From Trichoplax adhaerens (taxonomy: Eukaryota > Animalia > Placozoa), in contig NW_002060948.1 of the NCBI RefSeq assembly GCF_000150275.1, forward strand, positions 3,485,183 to 3,549,182: a DNA stretch of 64,000 nt, in the 5' to 3' direction. A program made the position numbers and the translations under genes. Positions within the stretch are counted from its first letter, which is position 1, and each line of letters starts with the position of its first letter. The notes below the pieces were generated by a model that saw only the letters and a list, made by a program, of their open reading frames with translations, was not told where the DNA came from and made no database searches. Of this stretch, positions 6,446 through 58,636 are shown piece by piece.

Positions 6446-9400
6446 TTACAATTCATCGCGAGAAGATTTCTTTTCATTCATTTCATCATTAATGCTTCCA
6501 CTATCAGTTTGTTCAGGTATTCCTTGGTTTCCGATTTCAGCAGACTCTTTCTTTAATTCCGTCTCCTCTGATCTTAGAGGATCTTCACCATCCGATATAT
6601 CACTTTCATTGCTATCTATTTCGTCAACTTTACCATCCGGATTAGCAAACAAACCTAGAACTTCATCCAACTTACTTAGTCTTTCCTCTTTACTAACTTT
6701 TCCGTTTCCGTTAGTATCAAATTTTCTCATAATCTATAGAAAGAAATTAATCATCATGTTCCATTCTTGCCCTCATTTTCTGTTAATGTACTGTAAATTC
6801 TTATATATTAAAGATCTAAAGTACTTATATATTAAAGCTATTACTACTATAGTACGTAGTTATCTAAATTTAAACCTTTTAAATCAGTCATTACCTCGTT
6901 TGCTGATTGCTCAGACCCTGATAGTAATTTCTAAAATATGGAATAAACCAGAGTATATTAAATTACCATGGCAATAATGAGAATTTGTCCCAATTTCGTG
7001 CTTGCATTGCGGAATTATATTGTCTATAATAGTAAATTAATAAATTATTGGATGGTTGTACCTCATAGAAAACGGCAAATTTTCTAGTATTAATTCCTCC
7101 AGCTTTATCAATGGTTTTCTCGATTATCGATCTGGAAATAGTTATAAAGATTGTGTAAGTATATAACGACAGTAGCAAACTTCTACGGCTAGAAAACCAT
7201 AATCCAAGACGTATTGTATGCAATTAGAGAATGATTTTAGGCCAAATGTAGCTCCATAAAATATATTGTATTATCTTTTAGTCACAAGATTATTCATAAT
7301 TTAGCATTAAATGGTTGATCGCGAAAATATATACCCCTAAACTTGATAAGACTTGACTTACCGTATATCTTTCTTTGTATAGATGCGATATTCATATTTT
7401 AAAGGATTTTCCGGATCTAAATCAAAGTAGTATATTAAATTTATCCAAGATTGCAGAGGGAGGTCAGCGATCTCATCAGTAGTGACAACGTTTTTATTCT
7501 CTATCTGGAGATTTTTTCGTATCTATGTAGAAGCAAGTTTTAATTAGTAGCCACATCTATCAATAAAACGTTGCTTACAAATCAGATTAGAGACTAAAAT
7601 CTTTAGTATCGGCTGGCTTTACTTACTAATTTTATCACTTTGTTTATGTGATCAGAGCCTCGATCAGGAATGGTACGCTTAAATAAGTACAGTATAAAAT
7701 TTAGTTCGATAAGGCTATAAGAATCAAACACCGTCACCATGATCAATACCTATGGAAAAACGCTAGAAGTACAATTTTGTATCTTGATTTCTGAAATAAC
7801 AGGTTTCTTTTAAAAAAAATGATATACTACCTTGAGTCTCCTTAAAAGCACTTCAGTCCTTATTTTTTTCTTGCCTTTAAATGCTTGAAATGCAGCTTCT
7901 CTATTTCAAGTGAAGAAAATAATTAATAAATTGAACAAAATTGGCCAAACTACTACTGCTATCAATTCCAATCTTAACATTTCACTTTTTCGTAGAAATT
8001 AAAATCTCAAACGTAAGGTTTCAAGAATTTAAAATCTGTCAAAAGAATCGTGATTAATGTGTAATATTAGATTTTCATGATGATGAAATTCACAGCGATG
8101 GCTTACTCAAAGTATAAAGTTATAGATACACAAATTTAAAATTTAGTATGTAACAATTTGGTATGTAACTTAAAATATTGAATCTCTAGAATCATTAACT
8201 AAAAATTGTAATAAAGTCCAGCAGTAACATTGCTTAACAAAATTTCTTCCAAGCTTGAAGGCACAGAATTAAACTTGTAAAAACCTGTATAAATTAGGAT
8301 CTTGCAAATCAACAACTGGGGTTGTATGGCTATTAATTTGCCAATCAAACATGGGGTCCCGAATATTTTTATATTTCGACGTTTGACAATCCTGGTTGTT
8401 AAACTTTTTCAAATGCGATACGCTTTGAGAAAATAAAAGCGAAACACGCATATTTTTAACACCATCTGTTCTTACTTGATACAAAGAATCTGAAAGGTAA
8501 AATTAATAAGAATTACCAAAAAACAACTATCATAACCTAAGTAGCTAATATTCAGGCCTTAAATTCTCTTATTAAGTTTCTTCAATATGTTTAAGTAATT
8601 ACAATTGACGGATTTTGGACCTAAATAATAGGCAACTAAAGCGAATATATGCTTTGCTGCACTTTCTCCTACTTAGTGTAAACCATATAATTCATTTCTT
8701 CTGCCTTAAGGTGACTATAGTAATCGGAAAACTTACCATGAGGAAGATAGATGCAGTCTCCTTTAGCTAAGGTAGCATCATAGTAAGGGCAATTTGAAAA
8801 TGCTGAATATTTCTGTAAGTCCACTTCATCAACTTGTAAGGCAGAACGTGTACTTCCATCTTTGGCTATCTCTTCTACCATGGGTACAAGATGTGCGTTT
8901 TGATTATCGATTAATATCCAATCACTCGTTCCATTCAATAAGCAATTGATCGTATTAGCTATTGGCATTAAAAAGAATTTGTGTCAAGGCAGAAACGGAG
9001 TCATTATTATTATAAATGGATTGCTATAAATAATACATGTATAGTATGTAGTGGTAGTTAAGATTATTAGTACCAAGCATTTTATCTCAATTATTCTATT
9101 TGCAGTTAATACGTATAACTTATTTATCTAACAGAACGCTATTAAGTAGTAATACAGTCATTTTACAACATAGCTACCAATATTATAGAAGCAGTAGCTC
9201 TTATTACTGATATATACGGTAGGATAATGATCAAAGCTGTAACTTTAGTAGTCTCTTTGGTAAAGCCCTTCATATCTGCAGTTTTTTTATTTTTGCATAA
9301 AACCCGTTAAAGACTTCGCAGTGTTAAGGAATAATTCGTATAAGACTTCTAATCCTAATAGATAGTATCTTGGGTGTGAAGCACGTAAGATGGATGCCTA

Positions 9401-11248
9401 ATAAAGAGCTAAAGATTATGATGATTTCAGTTAATTACAGGAGTGATGTGTTAGGGGATAAGAACCCATACACTGCAAAGATCTATCCGATAGCAGTACT
9501 CCTACTTCTGCTCATTAATTATGCAACAGGTAGGCGTTCATAACTATGAACATTTATCTTCCTTGTCTCCGGTCTACGTGTATTCTAACGCCCTTTATCC
9601 CGAATTTATGGCCAAACTGTTACAAATTTCACTTAAATCGGGAATTACAACATACGAAGCCAAGTGCATATAAGCATTGACTAAGAACTTTGCGTGACAT
9701 ATTTACCTTAATTTTTGAGTTCATGAAGGATGCTGGTTCTTATATTTATAGTGCAGATATTACCAAACCCAAGCTCAATCAGAAGGAATCGTAGGATACA
9801 TTAAAATGCTACAGATGACCGTCAATGTGGGTCAGTATGCTCGCATTATTATTGCAATTTGAAATGTCTTAGACTAATTTACTATTGCTCGTATAACTCA
9901 TCAATATAGTACGAGACAAAGGGGAGATGAAACACTTTATTTCAACAACTATAATATTGACCAACCTATTCTATTTGCCGATTTGTGATTGATAGGAACA
10001 GTAAAATGGACTTATCTTATCAAGACCATCTTATTACAACTTGTTAAAGTACCGTAATCATCTGCAATCTTATGGCTTCAATACTGTTCATATATCTAAT
10101 GGTGGAATTGATTTAAGAAGTTACTATTGATCAACTGCTATTCCCGTGCTCTAAGATTCTATCGAGAGTTAAAGCGTTGCACATCCCTAGCGTACGCCAA
10201 GAATACTTCGAGTACGGAATAGATTTATGTCATACGAAATTTACTGTATACCCTCAATAGGATTATCAGGCAAATCTTGTAAAATCTTGACGAATAACAT
10301 ATGGAATCTTTCGATCATAACAGAAATCTATTCCAATATTTCATCATGCCAATGATCAACATTAATATAATAAAAACGTTATAAGGCATCTGGGTTATAT
10401 GTTGGAACATCAATTTTGATTCGTCTAAATGCTGTTTGATGAAGTAAAGAAAGAGCTTACACTACATAACGTCATTTCGGTCTGCAATATTAGAGCGAGT
10501 GCGGTGCTTATTAGAGCTATTAATCGACTACAATATCTTACCATGCTAACATCATTAAATAATAGTATACGAGATAATATTTACAAAATCATAATAAATT
10601 TTCAAGTGCCCATTTCAGCAGTTACATACGCATTGATATGAGGAAATTGATGTATCTAACAAAGTCAGCTTTCACTAGTGAAGCTGATGAATATGCTCTT
10701 AACTTACAAGCATCTTTCCGTAGCGAACTTTTACTGTTACCGGTGTTAAGCCAAACATGTACATCAATCATAGCGGTTGTAAATGAGCCACATGAAAGGA
10801 AAGGTGGAATTAGCACATCGCGTTGCATGGGTTGAGGCAATTGAGAATCGATGCATTTGCTTTCATTGACATAAGTTGATATAAAATCATTCAAGGATTG
10901 GCGTTCTAGATGCCCTTGGTCATTAGAGATTTCTTCCTTTTCATTGATTTTAGCAGAATAAATCCAATAATTTCCATAAAAATTTCTTAAATAATCATCA
11001 GTCCATGAGTCTATCGCTGGAAAATCTAATGCCGCTTGCTTTAGTAAGACTGGTCGCCTTTGACCAACATACTTGCTCCAGAATTCTTCGGCAGAAATCG
11101 GTTCATTGAGTACATCAATATGCCCTTCAGCAGCACGATGTTGTCCTAATGGTTTAAGATGGCCCTTAGGTAACTTATAATTGTCATCCGCATTGCCCTG
11201 ATTGACCAAGATAGCAACTAAAAATAACACAGTAATTTTATAAGTCAT
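6446..11248 (-). CDS. ER-luminal JmjC/EF-hand/RDEL protein, paralog 2; catalytic residues lost (predicted pseudo-enzyme)
   Basis: Exons 11248-10708, 8958-8737, 8489-8285, 7900-7831, 7677-7627, 7522-7362, 7131-7062, 6930-6895, 6733-6446, all in phase with no stops. Signal peptide MTYKITVLFLVAILVNQGNA. Motifs read SSLRKD, GTSDW and PHDSLYQVRT where paralogs 1 and 3 have SLLHKD, GTKxW and PYGTLHHVRS. EF loop DTNGNGKVSKEE. Ends in RDEL*. Confidence 0.9.
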
Positions 11249-20411: not shown

Positions 20412-23400
20412 ATGGATGGCAATAACAAATACTTTGTGTTGATACTGCTCCATTTGTCACTAGCTTCCACTCATACTCTGCGTGGTCATTTACAACCTCT
20501 CGGTTTTCAACGTGATACTGATGGCGATATAACTACTCTTTCTATCTTACCAAGCAATGAAGAGTTTTATCAACTGTTGATAAACAAGGAGACTGCTTTA
20601 CTTAAAAATGCTGCTAAGCGTAGTCCAGCTATTGATCACTGGACAGAAAAATATTTAAAAGAAAAGTATGGCAATCTTACACTTAAACTAGAAGGGAAGA
20701 GTGAAGATCAGACAAGACCGGAAGGAAACTTAGGCTTAGGATTTGATACTATTAGTAACTTCATTGACAGCTACCATATCCAACCAAAGTATGCGGTTAC
20801 ACAATTACCTGATCCAATGCGTCATGAAATCTTCGTTATGCCATTTATGAGATGTGGACCCTTATCCACGAGTGTTATTGAAAGCCATTTATGGATGAGC
20901 TCAGGGCAAACCAGCAGCAGATTACACCGAGATAACAGTAAGACTACATTAGAAGTAAACCAGTATCCATGTCCATTTTGATAGCCAATTTTACTCAATA
21001 TCGAATGAGATGCCAAGAAATAATGTCTATAACAACATTTAAAGAAAAAATCTAAATAAAAACTTTCAATATAGATAGGCTCTTTATTGTATCTTAATGT
21101 TAATTTATAAATACTCGTTCAAAACATTTATAAAACGACTGAAATCATTCATTTCCTTACTCTTTTTAGCTTATACTCTTCATTGTTCAATTAAAGGCAG
21201 GAAAGATTGGATACTAATGGACTCTAAACATCTAGATAAAATGTACATTAATAATCAGGTGGACAATTTCTCAGGATCATCTTCTATCAACCCAGACCGT
21301 GTTAATTTACTACGATATCCTCGTATTGCTGAGATTCCATTTAAACAGGGAAATATTACTCCTGGTGATTGCATTCTGGTACCGCCAGGTACGAGAAAGA
21401 TAGTCTCCATCAGTATGACGACACGATGAGTTAGTTGATTCGTCCTGTAGTAAATTTTTTTCTCACTGCTTATTTTCAGTTTCTAGACGCTTACTACTAC
21501 ACTTGTAAAGTACTCGAAAGCTATCCGAGACATTGCTAATTATTTTTAATTAACTTGAGAATTATCCACTCTAGTCACTTTAAGGCGCGGTACAACTTAC
21601 TATTTAATATAGTCAACACATCTTCTTTAAATAAAGTAGGATCTGATTAATAGTTTAAAGAATGCACTTCCAACAATCGTTGTTAACTGATGCATAAAAC
21701 TAAATGTGCATTCAAATATCGTCTCAAGTAATTTAACACAATTTTATCATTGACGACTAAACCGCCTGTACTATCCTTGTTTAATATGCATCATTGCAAA
21801 CAATATTGGTAGTGATTGTAAAGTGCGTAATACTGTAATTCTACTAATATGCGGTAGCTGATTTCTTCTAAGCTTAAAGTAATCTATTGCATATTTCAAA
21901 AGGTTGCGCCCATCAAGTTCGTTCTCATGGCCCAGTGAATGTTGCCTTTACGTTTTTATTTGAAATTACTGATGACAAACTGAAAAATTTCAATCCTATC
22001 CATTGCAGTCAAGACTATGTACCACTAAGTCAATACCACCTAAGTTGGAGCTACTCAGGTAGTGGAATCCTTAGCATGGGGAATTCTGAATCCAACACAT
22101 TTAGGTACGGTACTATGGATTCTTTAGAGTTACCTTCTAGTGTGGTGTAGCAGTATTAATTAACTTACCTTTATATATCTTGATTTTCTTGATAATTTAC
22201 TCTACAAGAAGCAGTTACTACAACAAGATTCTGCTGCAGTTTGCTGTTTAATTTTTAAAACCGTTTTTGGAATTGGTAGTCTGTCACTATTACTTAACTG
22301 TCCATTATCATATCATAACTTTATCTTAAGTATTAATTAGTTACCGTTCAATTCATGGTTCATGAAGATACATCAGACTTGGACAATAAAGCTTGACGAT
22401 ATCATTTTATATGTAGGAAGGAAATACTAGAACAATGGTTTGGAAAGCGTACTAAAATCCATTTTAATATAATTCAGGATACTTTTGAAGGGGTAATACT
22501 TGATTTGAAACTTACCGTTGATGTCTGTTACAGATTTTTGATCGAATTATTTTCTATATTAGCTACTGAAGTATTATCCTAAAGAAGCAACTAAAGTCAC
22601 CACATTAGTGAAAGACATTGTAAGTTCCTGTCAGTTTGCATCAGTGTAAGAGCATAGCCTATAGCAGTGTTCATTAGATTATGAAATAATGAAAAAGTGT
22701 GACTTTCTCCCTGTAATTCGTTTTTGGGGCCATCATCTATCCGCTCCTTGAAGCTAAAACAATATAATGCCATTAATTCGAATGAAATCGTGTCGAGAGA
22801 AAGATGTGAGTCTATTACAATAGAAGACTGGAGGAAATTCCAATTTATAATTGAATCAGCAACCAATATTCAAAACAATCCTGACTACGAGTACTATCTT
22901 ACTAGCTACAGATTAGTTAGGTATTGCTTCAGAATGATCATACAGTTAACCAATATAAATGAGGAATTCATGCCAATAAAATAAATGATAATGCATTTTT
23001 TTACAGACAAGTAGCCGAAGAAGCAGTGGTCGAAACCTCTGGTTTATTTGACAAAATTAAGTTTAAGAACGGTTATAGGGTAAATAAAATTTGCGTCGAA
23101 TCACTTTTAGTATCTTATATGTTGCGTGTGCATATATGTATAATATACCGCAAGCCTCCAATCTGTAATTAATCTCATGCTGAAGGCATTCATTCGATTC
23201 ATTTTTATAGGCTGTGGGTGGCTCGGGGGCATTCGCAGATAAAGTAAGTCAATCAATTTAGCAGTAATTATGATTATAGTCGTATATCTTTACCAATAGT
23301 ATATTATTTTTAAGTTTTATCATCAAAGTAGTTATTATTGCTGATATATTAATGTTGTGCTACATTAAGTACTTAAGGTGTTAATACGCCTATAAGTACC

Positions 23401-31277: not shown

Positions 31278-34200
31278 TTATTTACTCGTCTTCCCTTTCT
31301 TATGATTAAGATTTTGAAAGAACTCTTTAACTTTCGATTTAGGCCTGTCATCTCCCAGTGGACTGCTATTAGTCTTACTTGGCGATACACGTCTCTTAGC
31401 TACAACAAGTTGCTGAGATAGTACAGGTGAACCGGCTTGCAACATGGCGATCGCATCTTCTCGACTCACAATTTGTCGTACAGCAAATTGCTTCTTCTTG
31501 CTGTTCTCATAATCTAAATTATTAGGACGATCTGATATGGCTACGCCATACTTATTCACGGTAGGATCAATTGCTGCTAAAACATTGGATGTTGTTTTTT
31601 GGGGTCCCTATGATATGTGAAATTTATTTAGTTAATACTATCAATTTGATCAAAATACGTACTGATTGAATTTATTGATTCACAATAGTATACGGATAGA
31701 TGTGAAAGTACAGCCTATTGAAATTTATCATTACCTGAATATTGCGCGTTACAATACTGTTAATGTCCTCCTATTGCAGCAGAAAAAATCGATAATCAAT
31801 TTATAGCAGATTTAAGGTAATTATTAATTATATAAGGAAAGAACTAAGATTGAATAATAATATCGATAACATCAATAAAGTTATAAAGTGAAGTCAATTT
31901 AATAAATCCTTTACCGGTTCAACAATTTCATATTCATGTTCAAATTCATCGCTATTATTTATGGCCTTAGATGGTTGATTCCTTCCATTTGGAGTAGATG
32001 GATCATCTCTACTATAACCATTTACACCATTTGATTGTGCTTTTTCTTGCTTCGTAGCTTTGCCGTTAGGTAAATGAATGGAACGCTGAGCATGATGATC
32101 ATTATTATGGGGAATAGGTGAACGAAAATCGTTTACGGTATTGCTAACAGGCATATTATGAGATGAATTTAAGGGAAATTCATGATTCTATAATAATATA
32201 ATTAATAAACAAGATAATCGATACCATTATTCAAAAATATCTTTAGCATAGAGAAAATAAACCTGTTACTAATCACAAAAATAGAATCTACAACTAACCT
32301 GCCGATGCAGTTTAGATGCTGCCTTGCGATTCATATCCCATCGTTTACCTCCATCGCTATTACGAAAACGTGATGATAAGTCATATTCTCGGTTATTTTC
32401 TTCTGTTATAAATTGAGACCGTGGAATAAACTCATTCCTAAATTGCTTGGGTAAGTGAGTACGATTACTACTTTCAAAGCTATTATCTTGAGATTGAGAA
32501 CTATCAGACTGCGCTTGTCTCCTAGGTCTATGCTTCATTGGATTCCAATCTATATCACTCATGCCATGATGAATATCTCCATCTTCGGAACCTTGAAAAT
32601 CGCTATTAGAAGATCGATCGGAAGTTTGAAATTCCGGATATTCCTTACGATATCGATATTGTTTATTACTGTGATTATCATAATAGGATTGACCACCATC
32701 ATGCCCATTATTGCCATTGTCATAATACATTCGCTGATTACCGTTACGACGATGATTGCGATGCTGGCGGTGATCATCATTTCCACTGCTGTTGGCAGCA
32801 AATCCACCAGATACAGGCTGTGCGATAACATTTGATTGGCTTGGGCTATCACTATATTGGCTACTACTAGAACTAGGCGATCTAAAAATAAGATATACCA
32901 AAAGATAAGTGTATATATGCCTTAAGGTATTAATACATAATAAATATTCATTTATATTAGTAAGTAAAAGAGAATCTATTATATCAATATGGATGCAATA
33001 ACAACCCCTAACTTTTTGTCTACCTTTTATCATGAGGATTAACATTGCCATTATGGTTATACTTATTACTATTATTACTATTATTGCTGTGTGTTCTGCG
33101 ATATTCATGCTCATGTCTTCTCCTAGCTAACTGAATTTCCTGCTTCCATAGCATACGGGCTAGTTCCTAATCATAATCACATAGCATTGTCAGAAAAATT
33201 ATATACTATCATATGTCTTATTTCTTTTCAATAGAGATTGATTGTATGCATAATGTACATATTCAAGTGAAATGGGTTATAGTACAGTAGTAAAATTAAT
33301 CTAGATTTATTATTTGTCATCCAGCTATAGTAATAAGGAAGTTTATTCACTGTTTCAGAGAAAATCTAAATGGGTTTCCATGTAATATTTATTTTAAATG
33401 ATGAGAAAGCATCACGACTGCTAGGTAAAGTGCGTAAACAGTTGAAAAAATCGTTTTGAAACTAAATCATTATGGGTAAATTAATAGCAGGATACGGGGA
33501 AATTTTAACTATATATCACGTCTGATCACCTGATCTTGTAATTCCTGGGCCATTCTATGATCGATAACGTCATCCTATTTGCAAAAATGAGATTTTAAAT
33601 ATATCGCTTTTGAACTTGAAGAAATAAACGTTACTTGGTAGATACAGGTTAAACCGTATTAAATAATGATATGAGATTGACTTCAATTATTGTTAAGATA
33701 TTGTACTAATGTTGGTAACCGTTACAAATTAATGCCTTACTACTTCTACATAAGTCCTAGTTAATAACAATATCGTGTCCTTATCGTAGTAAATTTCGCT
33801 AAATCCCGTAAATAACTATCTTTAATTGGACAACGATTGCTAATGGCCAGTAATTAGTTCATGTATTAACTTTTAAAACTCAATCTAGTATACATAAATT
33901 CTCTTTTAATTTAAAGATAAACAACAAATTCATCCTAAGAAGATTATTGAAACATAAAATCATAGTTTATGCTGTCGATAATTTGACAGCAGTTTTTTAC
34001 TTTGGAATTATAGTTATTGAAAATTATCGTTACCCGAATATGAGTTGGATTGTATTGACTATCAGGAGTCACATCATCCCTGCAGTACTTGTCGCTGTGT
34101 TATTATAAATAGAATTTAAAAAGATTAAAACATCATTTCTAAAAATATAGAAACTCTTATTAAGAAATTATTTCTTAGCAATAACGTAATATTTTCGTCG

Positions 34201-52412: not shown

Positions 52413-53489
52413 ATGGAGTTAACAGACTCTGAGTCACAATCAGAGGACAATGCCTTGGAAGATGTATTCGGAAGTAATCAACAAAGTACTGATATCAACC
52501 CTTTTGATAAGAATAATGTGCGACTTCGAATCTTAAAATGTGCAGCTAAACATGGCAACTGGGTCGCATTAGCATCACGATTAGGAATTAAATATAAAAC
52601 CGCATATAGTTGGATAAGAGGTAGAAGACATAACTGTCCACCTCCTCGAAGAGGAGCTTACAAACTCCTCTCATCCGATGATATCGACACATTAATTCGA
52701 TGGATAGAAGATGATCCAACATTAACTCTAAAACAAATTCGGGAAAGAATTTTTCGTGAATTTGATGGAATGGATATTAGTGTCAACACAATTTCAAGCT
52801 ATCTCTTAGAGCGCCAAATATCCATAAAGACGTATGAACCAAATTTACTAAGCATAGGTAAAGAAGACACTCAAGAAGCGCGTTGCAAATATATTAATCG
52901 GATTACAACAGCAGTGCAATCAGGTAAAAGCATCATCTGGATAGCAGAAATCAGTTTTAGTATCTGCTGCAATAGCACTCAAGAGGTTGAGATTGAAATT
53001 AGGAATCCTGTCCCTTTACCTAGTAGCAAGAATCCAAATGTTCACCTGATCGTTGCCATGGCCGACAATGGTATTATTAAGATTACGAAAAAGAAACAGT
53101 ATTTCAAAGAGCAAAATCTGAATTATTGGATAGTAAGATTATTGAAAAACCTTAAATCTCAAGGAATGTCACTCGATAACGTGGTGTTAATTTGCGATCT
53201 TCCCAAATCGCGTCAATCTAGTCTTCAATTAAAGATTTTTGACATAAATCCTCAGATAAAACTATTTCGGTTAGGGCCTTACGCATCATTATTAAATCCA
53301 GCTGAAATGTTATGGTCTAAAATAAAGGCATTTATTAAAGCCAATCTTCGTAAATGTATGATGACTCGAACCATTAGTCGCGAACAACGCTTCGTATACC
53401 TTCAAAACTTTATCCATAATGCCATCGTTTCCTTGACAGATAGCGATATTCAAAAAGCCTCACAACGTATGACCAATTTCCAAGTGTGA
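52413..53489 (+). CDS. IS630/Tc1-mariner-like transposase-derived protein (HTH + degenerate DDE domain)
   Basis: Intronless 358-aa ORF. HTH WVALASRLGIKYKTAYSWIR. Second HTH IEDDPTLTLKQIRERIF...ISVNTISSYL. DDE-region motifs IIWIAEISF (expected D-E, here A-E), VLICD and YASLLNPAEMLWSKIK (cf. YSPxLNPIE.W), with D35E spacing. No TIRs found by eye. Confidence 0.8.
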   Translation: MELTDSESQSEDNALEDVFGSNQQSTDINPFDKNNVRLRILKCAAKHGNWVALASRLGIKYKTAYSWIRGRRHNCPPPRRGAYKLLSSDDIDTLIRWIEDDPTLTLKQIRERIFREFDGMDISVNTISSYLLERQISIKTYEPNLLSIGKEDTQEARCKYINRITTAVQSGKSIIWIAEISFSICCNSTQEVEIEIRNPVPLPSSKNPNVHLIVAMADNGIIKITKKKQYFKEQNLNYWIVRLLKNLKSQGMSLDNVVLICDLPKSRQSSLQLKIFDINPQIKLFRLGPYASLLNPAEMLWSKIKAFIKANLRKCMMTRTISREQRFVYLQNFIHNAIVSLTDSDIQKASQRMTNFQV

Positions 53490-56400: not shown

Positions 56401-57226
56401 TTCTATTTGTTGTGAAAAGAAAGTAACCATAATTGTCATCAAAATATTGAAATTCGAATAACATTCTTGGTAGTCATGGATGTTGTTGTTAGAGTAATAT
56501 AACGGCAATTTATGTCACTATATATTTTTCTGAAGCAAGACTTTGTAGAAACAAATAAAATACGTCAATGATAAGTCAATATCCAGTTAAAGCGACAAAA
56601 GACAGATTCAACTATTATATCAATTGGTTGCAGCAATATGCAAAATAAATCAGATAAGCGTGCCTTTGAGTTCTATTCAGACAAAACTGTAAATACAACT
56701 TCTCAACTCCGTTCTAATTTATTATTTAGTACGACGTATTATCATTCTTTTCAAAGAACTATCAGTATTACAGATTAATTGGTATATCAAATTAATGAAT
56801 AAGATTTGGATGTACCGCTTCTAATTCTCAATTTCATCTACACTCATCTATAAGTGGGAAGATCCCTAGAAAAGGATTAAAGAGTAACAACAGACTTTTA
56901 CATCTCCTCAAGCTAAGAATTTACTAACATTTTCTCTCTATCGATTTAAGTACAGTTAAAATCAACTTGAAAACTTCGTAGGTTAATAAATCGATTTGTG
57001 AGCAAGTTTTAAATTTTCTACTGAAGAATCCTACTTTAAAACTGCTATTGTAGAACTCAGCAATAAAACTATTAGTAATTAAACTATTTTTCGCTATTCG
57101 TATGTGGATCACTAGTTAGTATACAGAATTTTGCATTTAATTATCAGTAAAGATAATACGTGGTTATTAATTAACAGAAGACGGTTGGTTAAATACCTGG
57201 CTAAAAGATATAGAAATCGAAAACCC

Positions 57227-58636
57227 ATGGATCTCGCGATGAAAATACCAGTATTCTTATCAATGTTATATATCGTTACTATCACGGCAAAAATATCAAG
57301 TGCTAATGGTTATCGAACAGTCTTTGTGAACCTAGATGGTAAGACTTTAAATAAAATGAAATTTGTCAAAAATGATGTACCGATTCAAGTAGATGCAGAA
57401 ACTAGGCATAACATAACCAGTAAATGGCTAAAATTACGATTTAAGCAAATAGGAACATCGGGCAATAAAATGTCCAAACTATCCATGAAATCTCTTAATC
57501 AAGACTCTTTCACAAAAATTCAATCATCAAGTAATCACAGAATACATCGTCGAGCGATTAACACTGAGGCAAATGTTAGGGATCATTGCCAATTAAGAGA
57601 GATAAAATATCAAGCGTATCGTTGGATCAATACTTCTCATATTTTTTTACTAAATGATGATACAAGTAGAGCATTCAAAGTTGCCCAAATAACGGAGATA
57701 TCAGGAAACAATAAAAGTAACGTGCATATAAGAATCTGTACAGAAGTTATTGATAATAGATGGAATGAGACTTTAAGAGTTTTAAATTATATTACACCAA
57801 CACTAGAATTATTTTGCTACACACCAGTAATCATATTGCATATTGTAATATCTCGGCTAAATGAACGGTTCGATTACTTTTTCTTAAGTACATTACTTGG
57901 CACGATTGGTTACAAAATATTGAGACTAGCTGGCTCAATACTGCAGCATATTCGACCTTCTTTATTACCTGAATGCCAAGTATTGGCTACATTTAGGCAT
58001 TATTTTCTAACCGTATCCTATGCATCAATGATTGTGGTAGTCTTTGATATTTATTTCTATTTCTCTTGTCATACTCCTCCTTCTTCAGAAGGTTTATTAA
58101 AAATCTATTACATCTGTTTTGCATGGCTAATTCCAGCGATGCTATCAATAACGTTGTTTTCGATCAAGTATGTCGACAATTCGTATGATATTTTAGACGG
58201 TACCCCACGGTGTGATATTACTGAAACTTGGGCTCGTATGGCCTTTGTTATCATTCCATGCGTTATTACATTTTTAATTACCATCTTGTTTCCGTTTTTT
58301 GCAAAGAAAGTTATCAGATCTCGAAGACTAAAGTATCGAAGAGCATCGGAAGATAAGAAGCTAATTGCTAGAAAGTACAATTGCATCATTAAATATACCA
58401 TCTTTGTTATGATTATTTTGGCTGCCAATTTAGTCAACGACACAACAGAAGTCAGTATTGCAACTCATCAACGAATAGTTCAATTGCACGTTTTTGCTCG
58501 CGTTGCTGATATTTTATGTGCCATATTCAGTGTAATTGTCATGGCTGTAATGTTTTTTAAATGGTTAAAAGTAATGAACAGCTTTGCCAATCGTAGGCAA
58601 GACCTCAATCAACTTATGAATCATAATCAACAATAA
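57227..58636 (+). CDS. Intronless 7TM GPCR, secretin/adhesion (class B2/Methuselah-like) type
   Basis: Probable start M33 of the ORF (MDLAMKIPVFLSMLYIVTITAKISSA, signal-like). Extracellular region with RIHRR furin-like site. Seven hydrophobic segments, including TM3 CQVLATFRHYFLTVSYASMIVV, TM4 YYICFAWLIPA, an ECL2 Cys, and TM5 FVIIPCVITF. Confidence 0.8.
   Translation: MDLAMKIPVFLSMLYIVTITAKISSANGYRTVFVNLDGKTLNKMKFVKNDVPIQVDAETRHNITSKWLKLRFKQIGTSGNKMSKLSMKSLNQDSFTKIQSSSNHRIHRRAINTEANVRDHCQLREIKYQAYRWINTSHIFLLNDDTSRAFKVAQITEISGNNKSNVHIRICTEVIDNRWNETLRVLNYITPTLELFCYTPVIILHIVISRLNERFDYFFLSTLLGTIGYKILRLAGSILQHIRPSLLPECQVLATFRHYFLTVSYASMIVVVFDIYFYFSCHTPPSSEGLLKIYYICFAWLIPAMLSITLFSIKYVDNSYDILDGTPRCDITETWARMAFVIIPCVITFLITILFPFFAKKVIRSRRLKYRRASEDKKLIARKYNCIIKYTIFVMIILAANLVNDTTEVSIATHQRIVQLHVFARVADILCAIFSVIVMAVMFFKWLKVMNSFANRRQDLNQLMNHNQQ

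Follow-up and report, generated by a model that had tools for sequence, protein, structure and literature searches.

A conserved JMJD5-like paralogue of Trichoplax adhaerens that lacks metal and 2-oxoglutarate ligands is probably an ER-retained pseudoenzyme

A stretch of the genome of the placozoan Trichoplax adhaerens that carries several genes for JmjC-type hydroxylase-like proteins includes one copy, here called paralog 2, in which residues needed for catalysis are replaced. Two questions are raised by this locus: (i) whether paralog 2 is a decaying gene or a maintained protein without the usual chemistry; and (ii) what such a protein might do. The stretch analysed, called the window, is 64,000 nucleotides (nt) long (C1409:3485183-3549182, C1409 being our label for the contig) and belongs to a genome of 105,631,681 bases in 1414 contigs with about 32% G+C. 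The original prediction, made from the letters of the window, had described paralog 2 as an intact pseudoenzyme with a targeted loss of active-site residues and a kept scaffold. That description is upheld here by dead states shared between species, by ratios of nonsynonymous to synonymous substitution (dN/dS) of 0.17-0.27, and by a predicted JMJD5-like fold. Our answer to the first question, to which we assign a probability of roughly 0.8, is that paralog 2 encodes a conserved, soluble, JMJD5-like pseudoenzyme retained in the endoplasmic reticulum (ER), which would have no canonical binding of Fe(II) and 2-oxoglutarate (2OG), and which has been under purifying selection since before Trichoplax and at least two other placozoan-type species split.

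Paralog 2 corresponds to TRIADDRAFT_57500 (XP_002113756.1 / B3RZL5), and its own database entry was recovered by protein search. The gene is organized as follows.

6446..11248, minus strand: whole gene of paralog 2, nine exons, 547 amino acids (aa)
11248-10708, minus strand: exon 1, signal-like N-terminus (aa 1-20) and first half of the Cupin_8/JmjC barrel
8958-8737, minus strand: exon 2, barrel strands, including N-G-T-S192-D-W
8489-8285, minus strand: exon 3, final barrel strands, with D-S-L-Y258-Q-V
7900-7831, minus strand: exon 4
7677-7627, minus strand: exon 5, 51 nt, 17 aa
7522-7362, minus strand: exon 6
7131-7062, minus strand: exon 7
6930-6895, minus strand: exon 8
7900-6895, minus strand: exons 4-8 together, helical region C-terminal to the barrel, aa 323-452
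6733-6446, minus strand: exon 9

The introns are GT-AG throughout, and the coding sequence of 1644 nt specifies 547 aa followed by TAA, with no internal stops. This rebuilt model is exactly the one first proposed, with the same nine exons and splice sites and no frameshift or stop. The T. adhaerens RefSeq protein (P0005, 530 aa) equals the window model minus the 17 residues of exon 5, an exon that is present in the model of Trichoplax sp. H2 and, at equal size, in a further species described below (species B). The H2 protein (RDD39127.1, or P0153; 547 aa) shares this nine-exon structure, with six residue differences from paralog 2; it was automatically named "Lysine-specific demethylase 8" despite having no metal ligands. 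Paralog 2 is therefore already in the databases, under misleading names, and a literature search found no paper naming its accessions. In what follows, P0153 was the stand-in for paralog 2 in full-length Pfam searches, folding and complex prediction; database searches used single exons, or P0005 or P0153, and the joined coding sequence was used for local alignment, trees and dN/dS.

What has been lost from the active site can be read against JMJD5, in which the metal ligands are H321, D323 and H400, and the 2OG C5 carboxylate is contacted by K336, Y272 and S318, K336 being equivalent to FIH K214 (PMC9712658). Exon 1 of paralog 2 ends S-L-R177-K-D179-A, and a HMMER alignment sets its S-S-L-R-K-D under the S-P-L-H-Q-D of JMJD5, with R177 at H321 and D179 at D323. 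By spacing (R177+15), S192 occupies the position of K336 and FIH K214. Five codons are of particular interest.

10718..10720, minus strand: Arg177 (CGG), within S-L-R-K-D, replaces the proximal Fe-binding His (JMJD5 H321)
8924..8926, minus strand: Ser192 (AGT), within N-G-T-S-D-W, replaces the 2OG-binding Lys (JMJD5 K336)
8479..8481, minus strand: Tyr258 (TAT), within D-S-L-Y-Q-V, replaces the distal Fe-binding His (JMJD5 H400)
10853..10855, minus strand: Cys132 (TGC), replaces the Tyr that hydrogen-bonds the 2OG C5 carboxylate (JMJD5 Y272)
10847..10849, minus strand: Asp134 (GAT), at a position that is Val in 86% of the family

The three replacements originally proposed all stand: H-x-D to R-K-D (CGG at 10720-10718) by reading of the codon and by the HMMER alignment to JMJD5 H321, distal His to Tyr (TAT at 8481-8479) by codon and family alignment, and G-x-K-x-W to GTSDW by AGT at 8926-8924, which puts S192 at the Lys column. 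Among 71 family representatives, the proximal His is His in 100%, the Lys is Lys in 99% and the distal His is His in 99%; with columns this conserved, their joint loss is not chance variation. The Cys132 replacement is an additional loss. Its column is Tyr in 99% of the family and also in species B and a second further species, C, so only Trichoplax has lost it. In total, paralog 2 has substitutions at four of its six key residues, whereas D179, S174 and W166 are retained. The HxD/E...H facial triad of an active Fe(II)/2OG oxygenase is thus broken (R177-K-D179...Y258), and of the C5 carboxylate anchor only S174 remains, Lys having become S192 and Tyr C132. Across 48 columns conserved at 80% or more in the family, paralog 2 still has the structural Gly, Cys, Trp and Pro, the four near-invariant cysteines of the family among them, but has lost the catalytic residues. 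Paralog 2 is in these terms a homologue of active enzymes without essential catalytic residues, and because two of the three metal ligands and the 2OG-anchoring Lys (the Tyr too) are gone, it would be expected to have no hydroxylase activity. His164 was considered as a lineage-specific new metal ligand and dropped, since two active members of the gene array, g3 and paralog 4, also have His there.

The next question is whether these states are peculiar to one genome. Word searches with exon 1 and with a three-species profile returned only three exon-sized proteins, P0001, P0002 and P0003, and a search of the protein collection with P0153 gave no further orthologue of the dead lineage. P0002, from species B (four Logan runs), and P0001, from species C (two ENA metagenome assemblies, one of them marine-biofilm), both end S-K-L-R-K-D-A, the species C sequence being an exon 1 with R-K-D. 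The reciprocal search of the T. adhaerens genome with P0002 returns paralog 2 first (184 bits, against 134 for the runner-up). P0003, from the same runs as P0002, keeps H-K-D and is the orthologue of an active paralog, g5, at 74% identity. A contig of species B (L013) holds a complete nine-exon gene with the same phases and 552 aa, with R-K-D; its Lys site reads N-G-S-S-E-W and its distal His site G-T-F-Y-H-M. Arg at 177 is common to T. adhaerens, Trichoplax sp. H2, species B and species C, and Ser at the Lys column and Tyr at the distal His column are found in T. adhaerens, H2 and species B. In all, an unbroken open reading frame (ORF) is present in T. adhaerens, H2 and species B, and dead states are seen in four genomes. 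No variation occurs at R177, S192, Y258 or D134 among the species examined, nor within the segments DSQLPQPMQRD and LSCGS. A maximum-likelihood (ML) tree groups the three dead sequences with support of 100/100 on a stem of 0.87, and this clade is nested inside a clade of the active paralogs 1 and 3 and g5 (100/99). The R/S/Y state is not a Trichoplax accident.

Conservation of the dead state leads to the test that the original prediction had set for a decaying pseudogene, a dN/dS near 1. The ratios were estimated by the NG86 method with 300 bootstraps, and ML values were alike.

Species B versus species C, exon 1: dN/dS 0.27 (95% 0.17-0.47; largest replicate 0.56), dS about 0.6, unsaturated
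T. adhaerens versus species B, exons 1-3: dN/dS 0.23 (95% 0.13-0.33), dS about 1.5, near saturation
T. adhaerens versus species B, full length: dN/dS 0.17 (95% 0.09-0.24), dS about 1.9, near saturation
Active g5 versus its species B orthologue, control lineage: dN/dS 0.095 (95% 0.06-0.14)

The three comparisons for paralog 2 all lie far below 1, with bootstrap intervals below 0.5, as expected of a pseudoenzyme held by purifying selection across species. Between T. adhaerens and H2, the exons have 12 differences, six synonymous and six non-synonymous, where neutrality predicts about 9:3 non-synonymous to synonymous (binomial P 0.04); of 3159 intron sites, 21 differ. Paralog 2 is under purifying selection, which is weaker in the barrel than on the active sister.

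The distribution of this constraint along the protein is informative. Between T. adhaerens and species B the barrel has 53% identity and a dN of 0.35, whereas the helical region that follows it, together with the EF-hand, is the best conserved part, with 70% identity and a dN of about 0.19-0.20. Constraint has shifted from the barrel to this C-terminal helical/EF-hand module, which has the following landmarks near its end.

6683..6718, minus strand: EF-hand loop, D458-T-N-G-N-G-K-V-S-K-E-E469, canonical by eye
6449..6460, minus strand: RDEL, an ER-retrieval type C-terminus, followed by TAA at 6448-6446

The RDEL end had been claimed as retained, and the last six residues, S-S-R-D-E-L, are in fact identical in species B; the last two, E-L, are found in 85% of family representatives. 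The signal peptide and EF-hand loop had also been called intact, which holds by eye, although the Pfam score for the loop (DTNGNGKVSKEE) falls short of the threshold (EF-hand_1, 21.9 bits against a gathering cut-off of 25.4). The loop of species B reads D-V-N-R-N-G-K-I-S-K-E-E. At the N-terminus a hydrophobic helix spans residues 2-18 of the AlphaFold model, and the signal peptide was judged by inspection. The protein thus has both a signal-like N-terminus and a KDEL-type end, the signal half of this pair resting on that inspection.

Modelling of the structure, which had been proposed as a check, gave a confident JMJD5-like fold. AlphaFold2, run on P0153 with a 72-sequence family alignment, returned a model with a mean predicted local distance difference test (pLDDT) of 82.3 and a predicted template modelling score (pTM) of 0.74. 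Residues 30-483 are mostly above 90, the helices at 319-457 are mostly at 85-96, and an acidic tail (484-547) is disordered. The top Foldseek matches are structures of JMJD5, with template modelling (TM) scores of 0.84-0.87 (by target) and root mean square deviations of 2.4-3.0 A, followed by JMJD7, TYW5 and FIH; the predicted double-stranded beta-helix can be superposed on those of solved JmjC hydroxylases. The Pfam model Cupin_8 (PF13621) scores 88.3 bits on P0153 against a gathering cut-off of 27.4, and single exons also match it (exon 1, E 1.9e-8, 35 bits; exon 2, E 2.6e-8, 34.5 bits). The JmjC model (PF02373) does not match P0153, whereas it does match active paralog 4. By these predictions, the JMJD5-like scaffold is retained.

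Paralog 2 is a member of a family that is itself widespread. An exon-1 profile collected 598 cluster representatives at E <= 1e-10. Those bearing names come from a crinoid, a sea star, a hemichordate, tunicates, a sponge, a jellyfish, a flatworm, a nemertean, a bivalve, a priapulid and a choanoflagellate. Named members include those of Patiria (XP_038077551), Antedon (XP_071945559), Oscarella (XP_065831475) and Ptychodera (XP_070560023), with others in Ciona, Macrostomum, Tubulanus and Sanderia; all are uncharacterised or automatically named as JMJD5-, JMJD7- or KDM8-like, and many have KDEL-type ends. Paralog 2 belongs with these holozoan proteins by its architecture (ER-type Cupin_8 protein with an EF-hand and a KDEL-like end), its four conserved Cys and a C-terminal xDEL or xEEL. 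Of 98 representatives surveyed, 85 keep Y-H-D-K-H, and H, K and H are all lost only in placozoan paralog 2 and one other gene, g4.

The genomic setting of paralog 2 is a tandem array. The original prediction had counted four paralogs, and four do lie within the window, while exon-1 matches extend the array to at least nine members at C1409:3417487-3506115. Models reaching through exons 1-3 were built for eight members, and seven keep H, D, K and H. As first proposed, the alignment shows H, K and H kept in all three of the other paralogs in the window, whose first exons are at these positions.

3712-3167, minus strand: exon 1 of a paralog with H/K/H intact
18210-17665, minus strand: exon 1 of a paralog with H/K/H intact
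20412-20936, plus strand: exon 1 of a paralog with H/K/H intact

The second dead paralog, g4, lies outside the window.

C1409 about 3472985-3476450 (L028, L009), minus strand: g4, about 9 kb upstream of window base 1

In g4 the proximal His is Gln, the Lys is Glu and the distal His is Gln/Ser. The protein ends in RRRDEL; no canonical EF loop was seen. Its orthologue in species B (P0021, L031) carries W-Q-R-N and G-T-Q-E-W, which indicates that this dead lineage is conserved too, and its placement elsewhere in the tree indicates that the losses in paralog 2 and g4 were independent. Position 134 is acidic in paralog 2 (Asp) and likewise in g4 (Glu). The position is two residues past the 2OG-binding Tyr, and the acidic residue may be a convergent change, perhaps one that pairs with the new Arg or Gln of the empty metal site. 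More distant Cupin_8 clusters occur at C1410 (about 8.08-8.10 Mb), C1412 (about 2.725-2.736 Mb) and C1414 (about 7.669-7.673 Mb), and some of their copies carry in-frame stops.

As to what paralog 2 does, we suggest that it would act by binding rather than by catalysis. The C-terminal helical/EF-hand module would most probably be the interface to a partner, since constraint is stronger there, and the remodelled barrel would most probably be a ligand or peptide platform; the partner may be an active paralog or a shared substrate. Two roles are equally open, each carrying about a third of the weight. Paralog 2 may be a putative non-catalytic subunit that keeps an ancestral homodimer interface, forms heterodimers with active array members and regulates, stabilises or targets the active chain. 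Duplication inside the active clade of paralogs 1 and 3 and g5 is the usual route to heteromers of paralogs, and the post-barrel region and EF-hand are the most constrained parts of the protein; FIH, JMJD7 and TYW5 dimerise via C-terminal helices. JMJD8, which is ER-lumenal, forms dimers or oligomers (PMC5684140). Heteromers with active paralogs are plausible because the dead clade arose inside the active one and because JmjC-only hydroxylases, JMJD8 included, oligomerise. Over exon 6 and the EF region, the T. adhaerens and species B orthologues share 72% identity and the active paralogs 38-60%; this contrast favours the subunit role but is only suggestive, because the paralog comparisons span older divergences than the orthologue comparison. 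A predicted complex of paralog 4 (P0011, residues 20-470) with P0153 (21-483) scored 0.00, which speaks neither for nor against binding. Alternatively, paralog 2 may be a putative autonomous binder whose barrel still recognises the substrate of the family or a small ligand without modifying it; in the ER it would serve as a reader, holdase or decoy, possibly Ca2+-gated through the EF-hand. A pocket remodelled in a lineage-invariant way (R177, S192, Y258 and D134) is unlike random decay, an acidic residue 134 arose in both dead lineages, and the fold is predicted with high confidence; however, the barrel, with its dN of 0.35, is the faster-evolving part.

Two further explanations carry little weight. 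It is improbable that paralog 2 is an enzyme of altered chemistry, in which Asp179, Tyr258 and other residues would bind a different metal or cofactor. In its favour are the survival of Asp179, Ser174 and Trp166, the variety of metal sites among cupins, and PHF2, which is functional with a distal Tyr; but no metal can be coordinated by an Arg that stands in for the proximal ligand, the 2OG-holding Lys and, in Trichoplax, the Tyr are gone, and the JmjC Pfam model finds no match. Less probable still is a recently disabled copy drifting towards a pseudogene. Amino-acid change faster in the barrel than in the active sister and the long stem branch of the dead clade are what such a copy might show, yet T. 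adhaerens, H2 and species B all have an intact frame across the nine exons, the three replacements are shared across a dS of about 1.5-1.9, no bootstrap replicate of the dN/dS of 0.17-0.27 exceeds 0.56, and splice sites, RDEL and EF loop are all kept. We reject a decaying pseudogene on the strength of the shared dead states, the intact ORFs and a dN/dS well below 1.

Several points nevertheless weigh against a conserved ER pseudoenzyme. The T. adhaerens-species B ratios are rough because dS is near saturation, and the one comparison that is free of saturation is limited to the 185 codons of exon 1. Barrel dN is 0.34 against 0.14 in the active sister lineage, and since this is about 2.5 times faster, constraint on the barrel is partly relaxed. 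That species B and C are placozoan we infer from one-to-one orthology with three different array members and from the sharing of intron positions. The loss of hydroxylase activity we likewise infer, from the structural chemistry of JMJD5 and FIH; Asp179, Ser174 and Trp166 are still in the pocket, and PHF2 tolerates the distal His-to-Tyr change alone. The protein collection holds no transcript-derived copy of paralog 2, and TriadG57500 and neighbouring identifiers were not found in the accessible portions of the placozoan cell-atlas supplements (PMC10580291).

Comparison with known systems places such a conserved ER pseudoenzyme between several precedents. JMJD5/KDM8 is the best match among solved structures (profile E 5e-9) and has the same double-stranded beta-helix, with S174, W166 and D179 of paralog 2 at S318, W310 and D323. 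It differs in that its H321, H400, K336 and Y272 are Arg, Tyr, Ser and Cys in paralog 2, which adds a signal-like N-terminus, a helical extension of about 130 residues, an EF-hand, an acidic disordered tail and RDEL; moreover, JMJD5 is nuclear or cytosolic, and the two proteins are non-orthologous, at about 20% identity. By location the closest known system is JMJD8, which is about half the length, without EF-hand or KDEL-type end. Its name appeared in none of 30 family clusters looked up. Like paralog 2, it is a JmjC-only protein with a signal peptide in the ER lumen, and its own catalytic activity is unproven (PMC5684140).

JARID2 and Epe1 are, by analogy, the closest functional precedents. 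In both, the JmjC fold has its metal and 2OG ligands replaced, is evolutionarily conserved, and acts by binding or complex formation. They differ from paralog 2 in being nuclear chromatin proteins of the lysine demethylase (KDM) branch with many extra domains, whereas paralog 2 belongs to the JmjC-only hydroxylase branch, is of ER-lumenal type and stands in tandem with active relatives. The precedent first proposed, CRTAP with P3H1, is apt insofar as an ER-lumenal non-catalytic relative there forms a complex with an active 2OG hydroxylase. It is loose in other respects: CRTAP is similar to the N-terminal, non-catalytic portion of P3H1 and lacks a dioxygenase domain altogether, so that it is not a dead-site paralogue, and the enzyme is of the P4H-type 2OG-oxygenase family, not JmjC. 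The complex is also known in that case, whereas paralog 2 is known from sequence and a predicted fold.

Some other features of the locus deserve mention. Exon 2 holds seven of the 12 differences that separate the exons of T. adhaerens and H2 (window 8779-8899, aa 201-241; compared to L030), and at five of six aligned sites there the H2 base is that of paralog 3. This pattern looks like gene conversion by paralog 3 over a short tract, which ends about 27 nt short of the Ser192 codon, and the dead state was therefore not overwritten. Elsewhere in the window, an intronless 358-aa ORF (52413-53489, plus strand) has HTH_28 and DDE_3 transposase domains and is probably a Tc1/mariner- or IS630-like element. 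Two long ORFs (32269-33114, minus strand, 281 aa; 57131-58636, plus strand, 501 aa) had no Pfam match.

Finally, we consider what paralog 2 means for the family. Two independent, anciently conserved dead paralogs, paralog 2 and g4, may together with the active ones form a Ca2+-linked luminal hydroxylation system in which the dead members pair or compete with the active members, a proposal that we regard as doubtful but worth stating. Dead JmjC proteins are known from chromatin biology, but they are not known from the ER lumen or from the branch of JmjC-only hydroxylases. The practical weight of the finding is modest, Trichoplax not being a model for biochemistry. Public annotation is corrected at two points, the misleading name of the H2 protein and the exon missing from the T. 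adhaerens RefSeq model. A conserved dead member beside active siblings is a natural negative control for enzymology, and paralog 2 is a likely bait for the substrates or complexes of the family. The ER Cupin_8, EF-hand and KDEL-type family is large, widespread in invertebrates and uncharacterised; if the Ca2+-linked system of dead and active members proposed above is real, it would represent the first ER-lumenal JmjC pseudoenzyme system and would provide a handle on an animal-wide family of uncharacterised hydroxylases.

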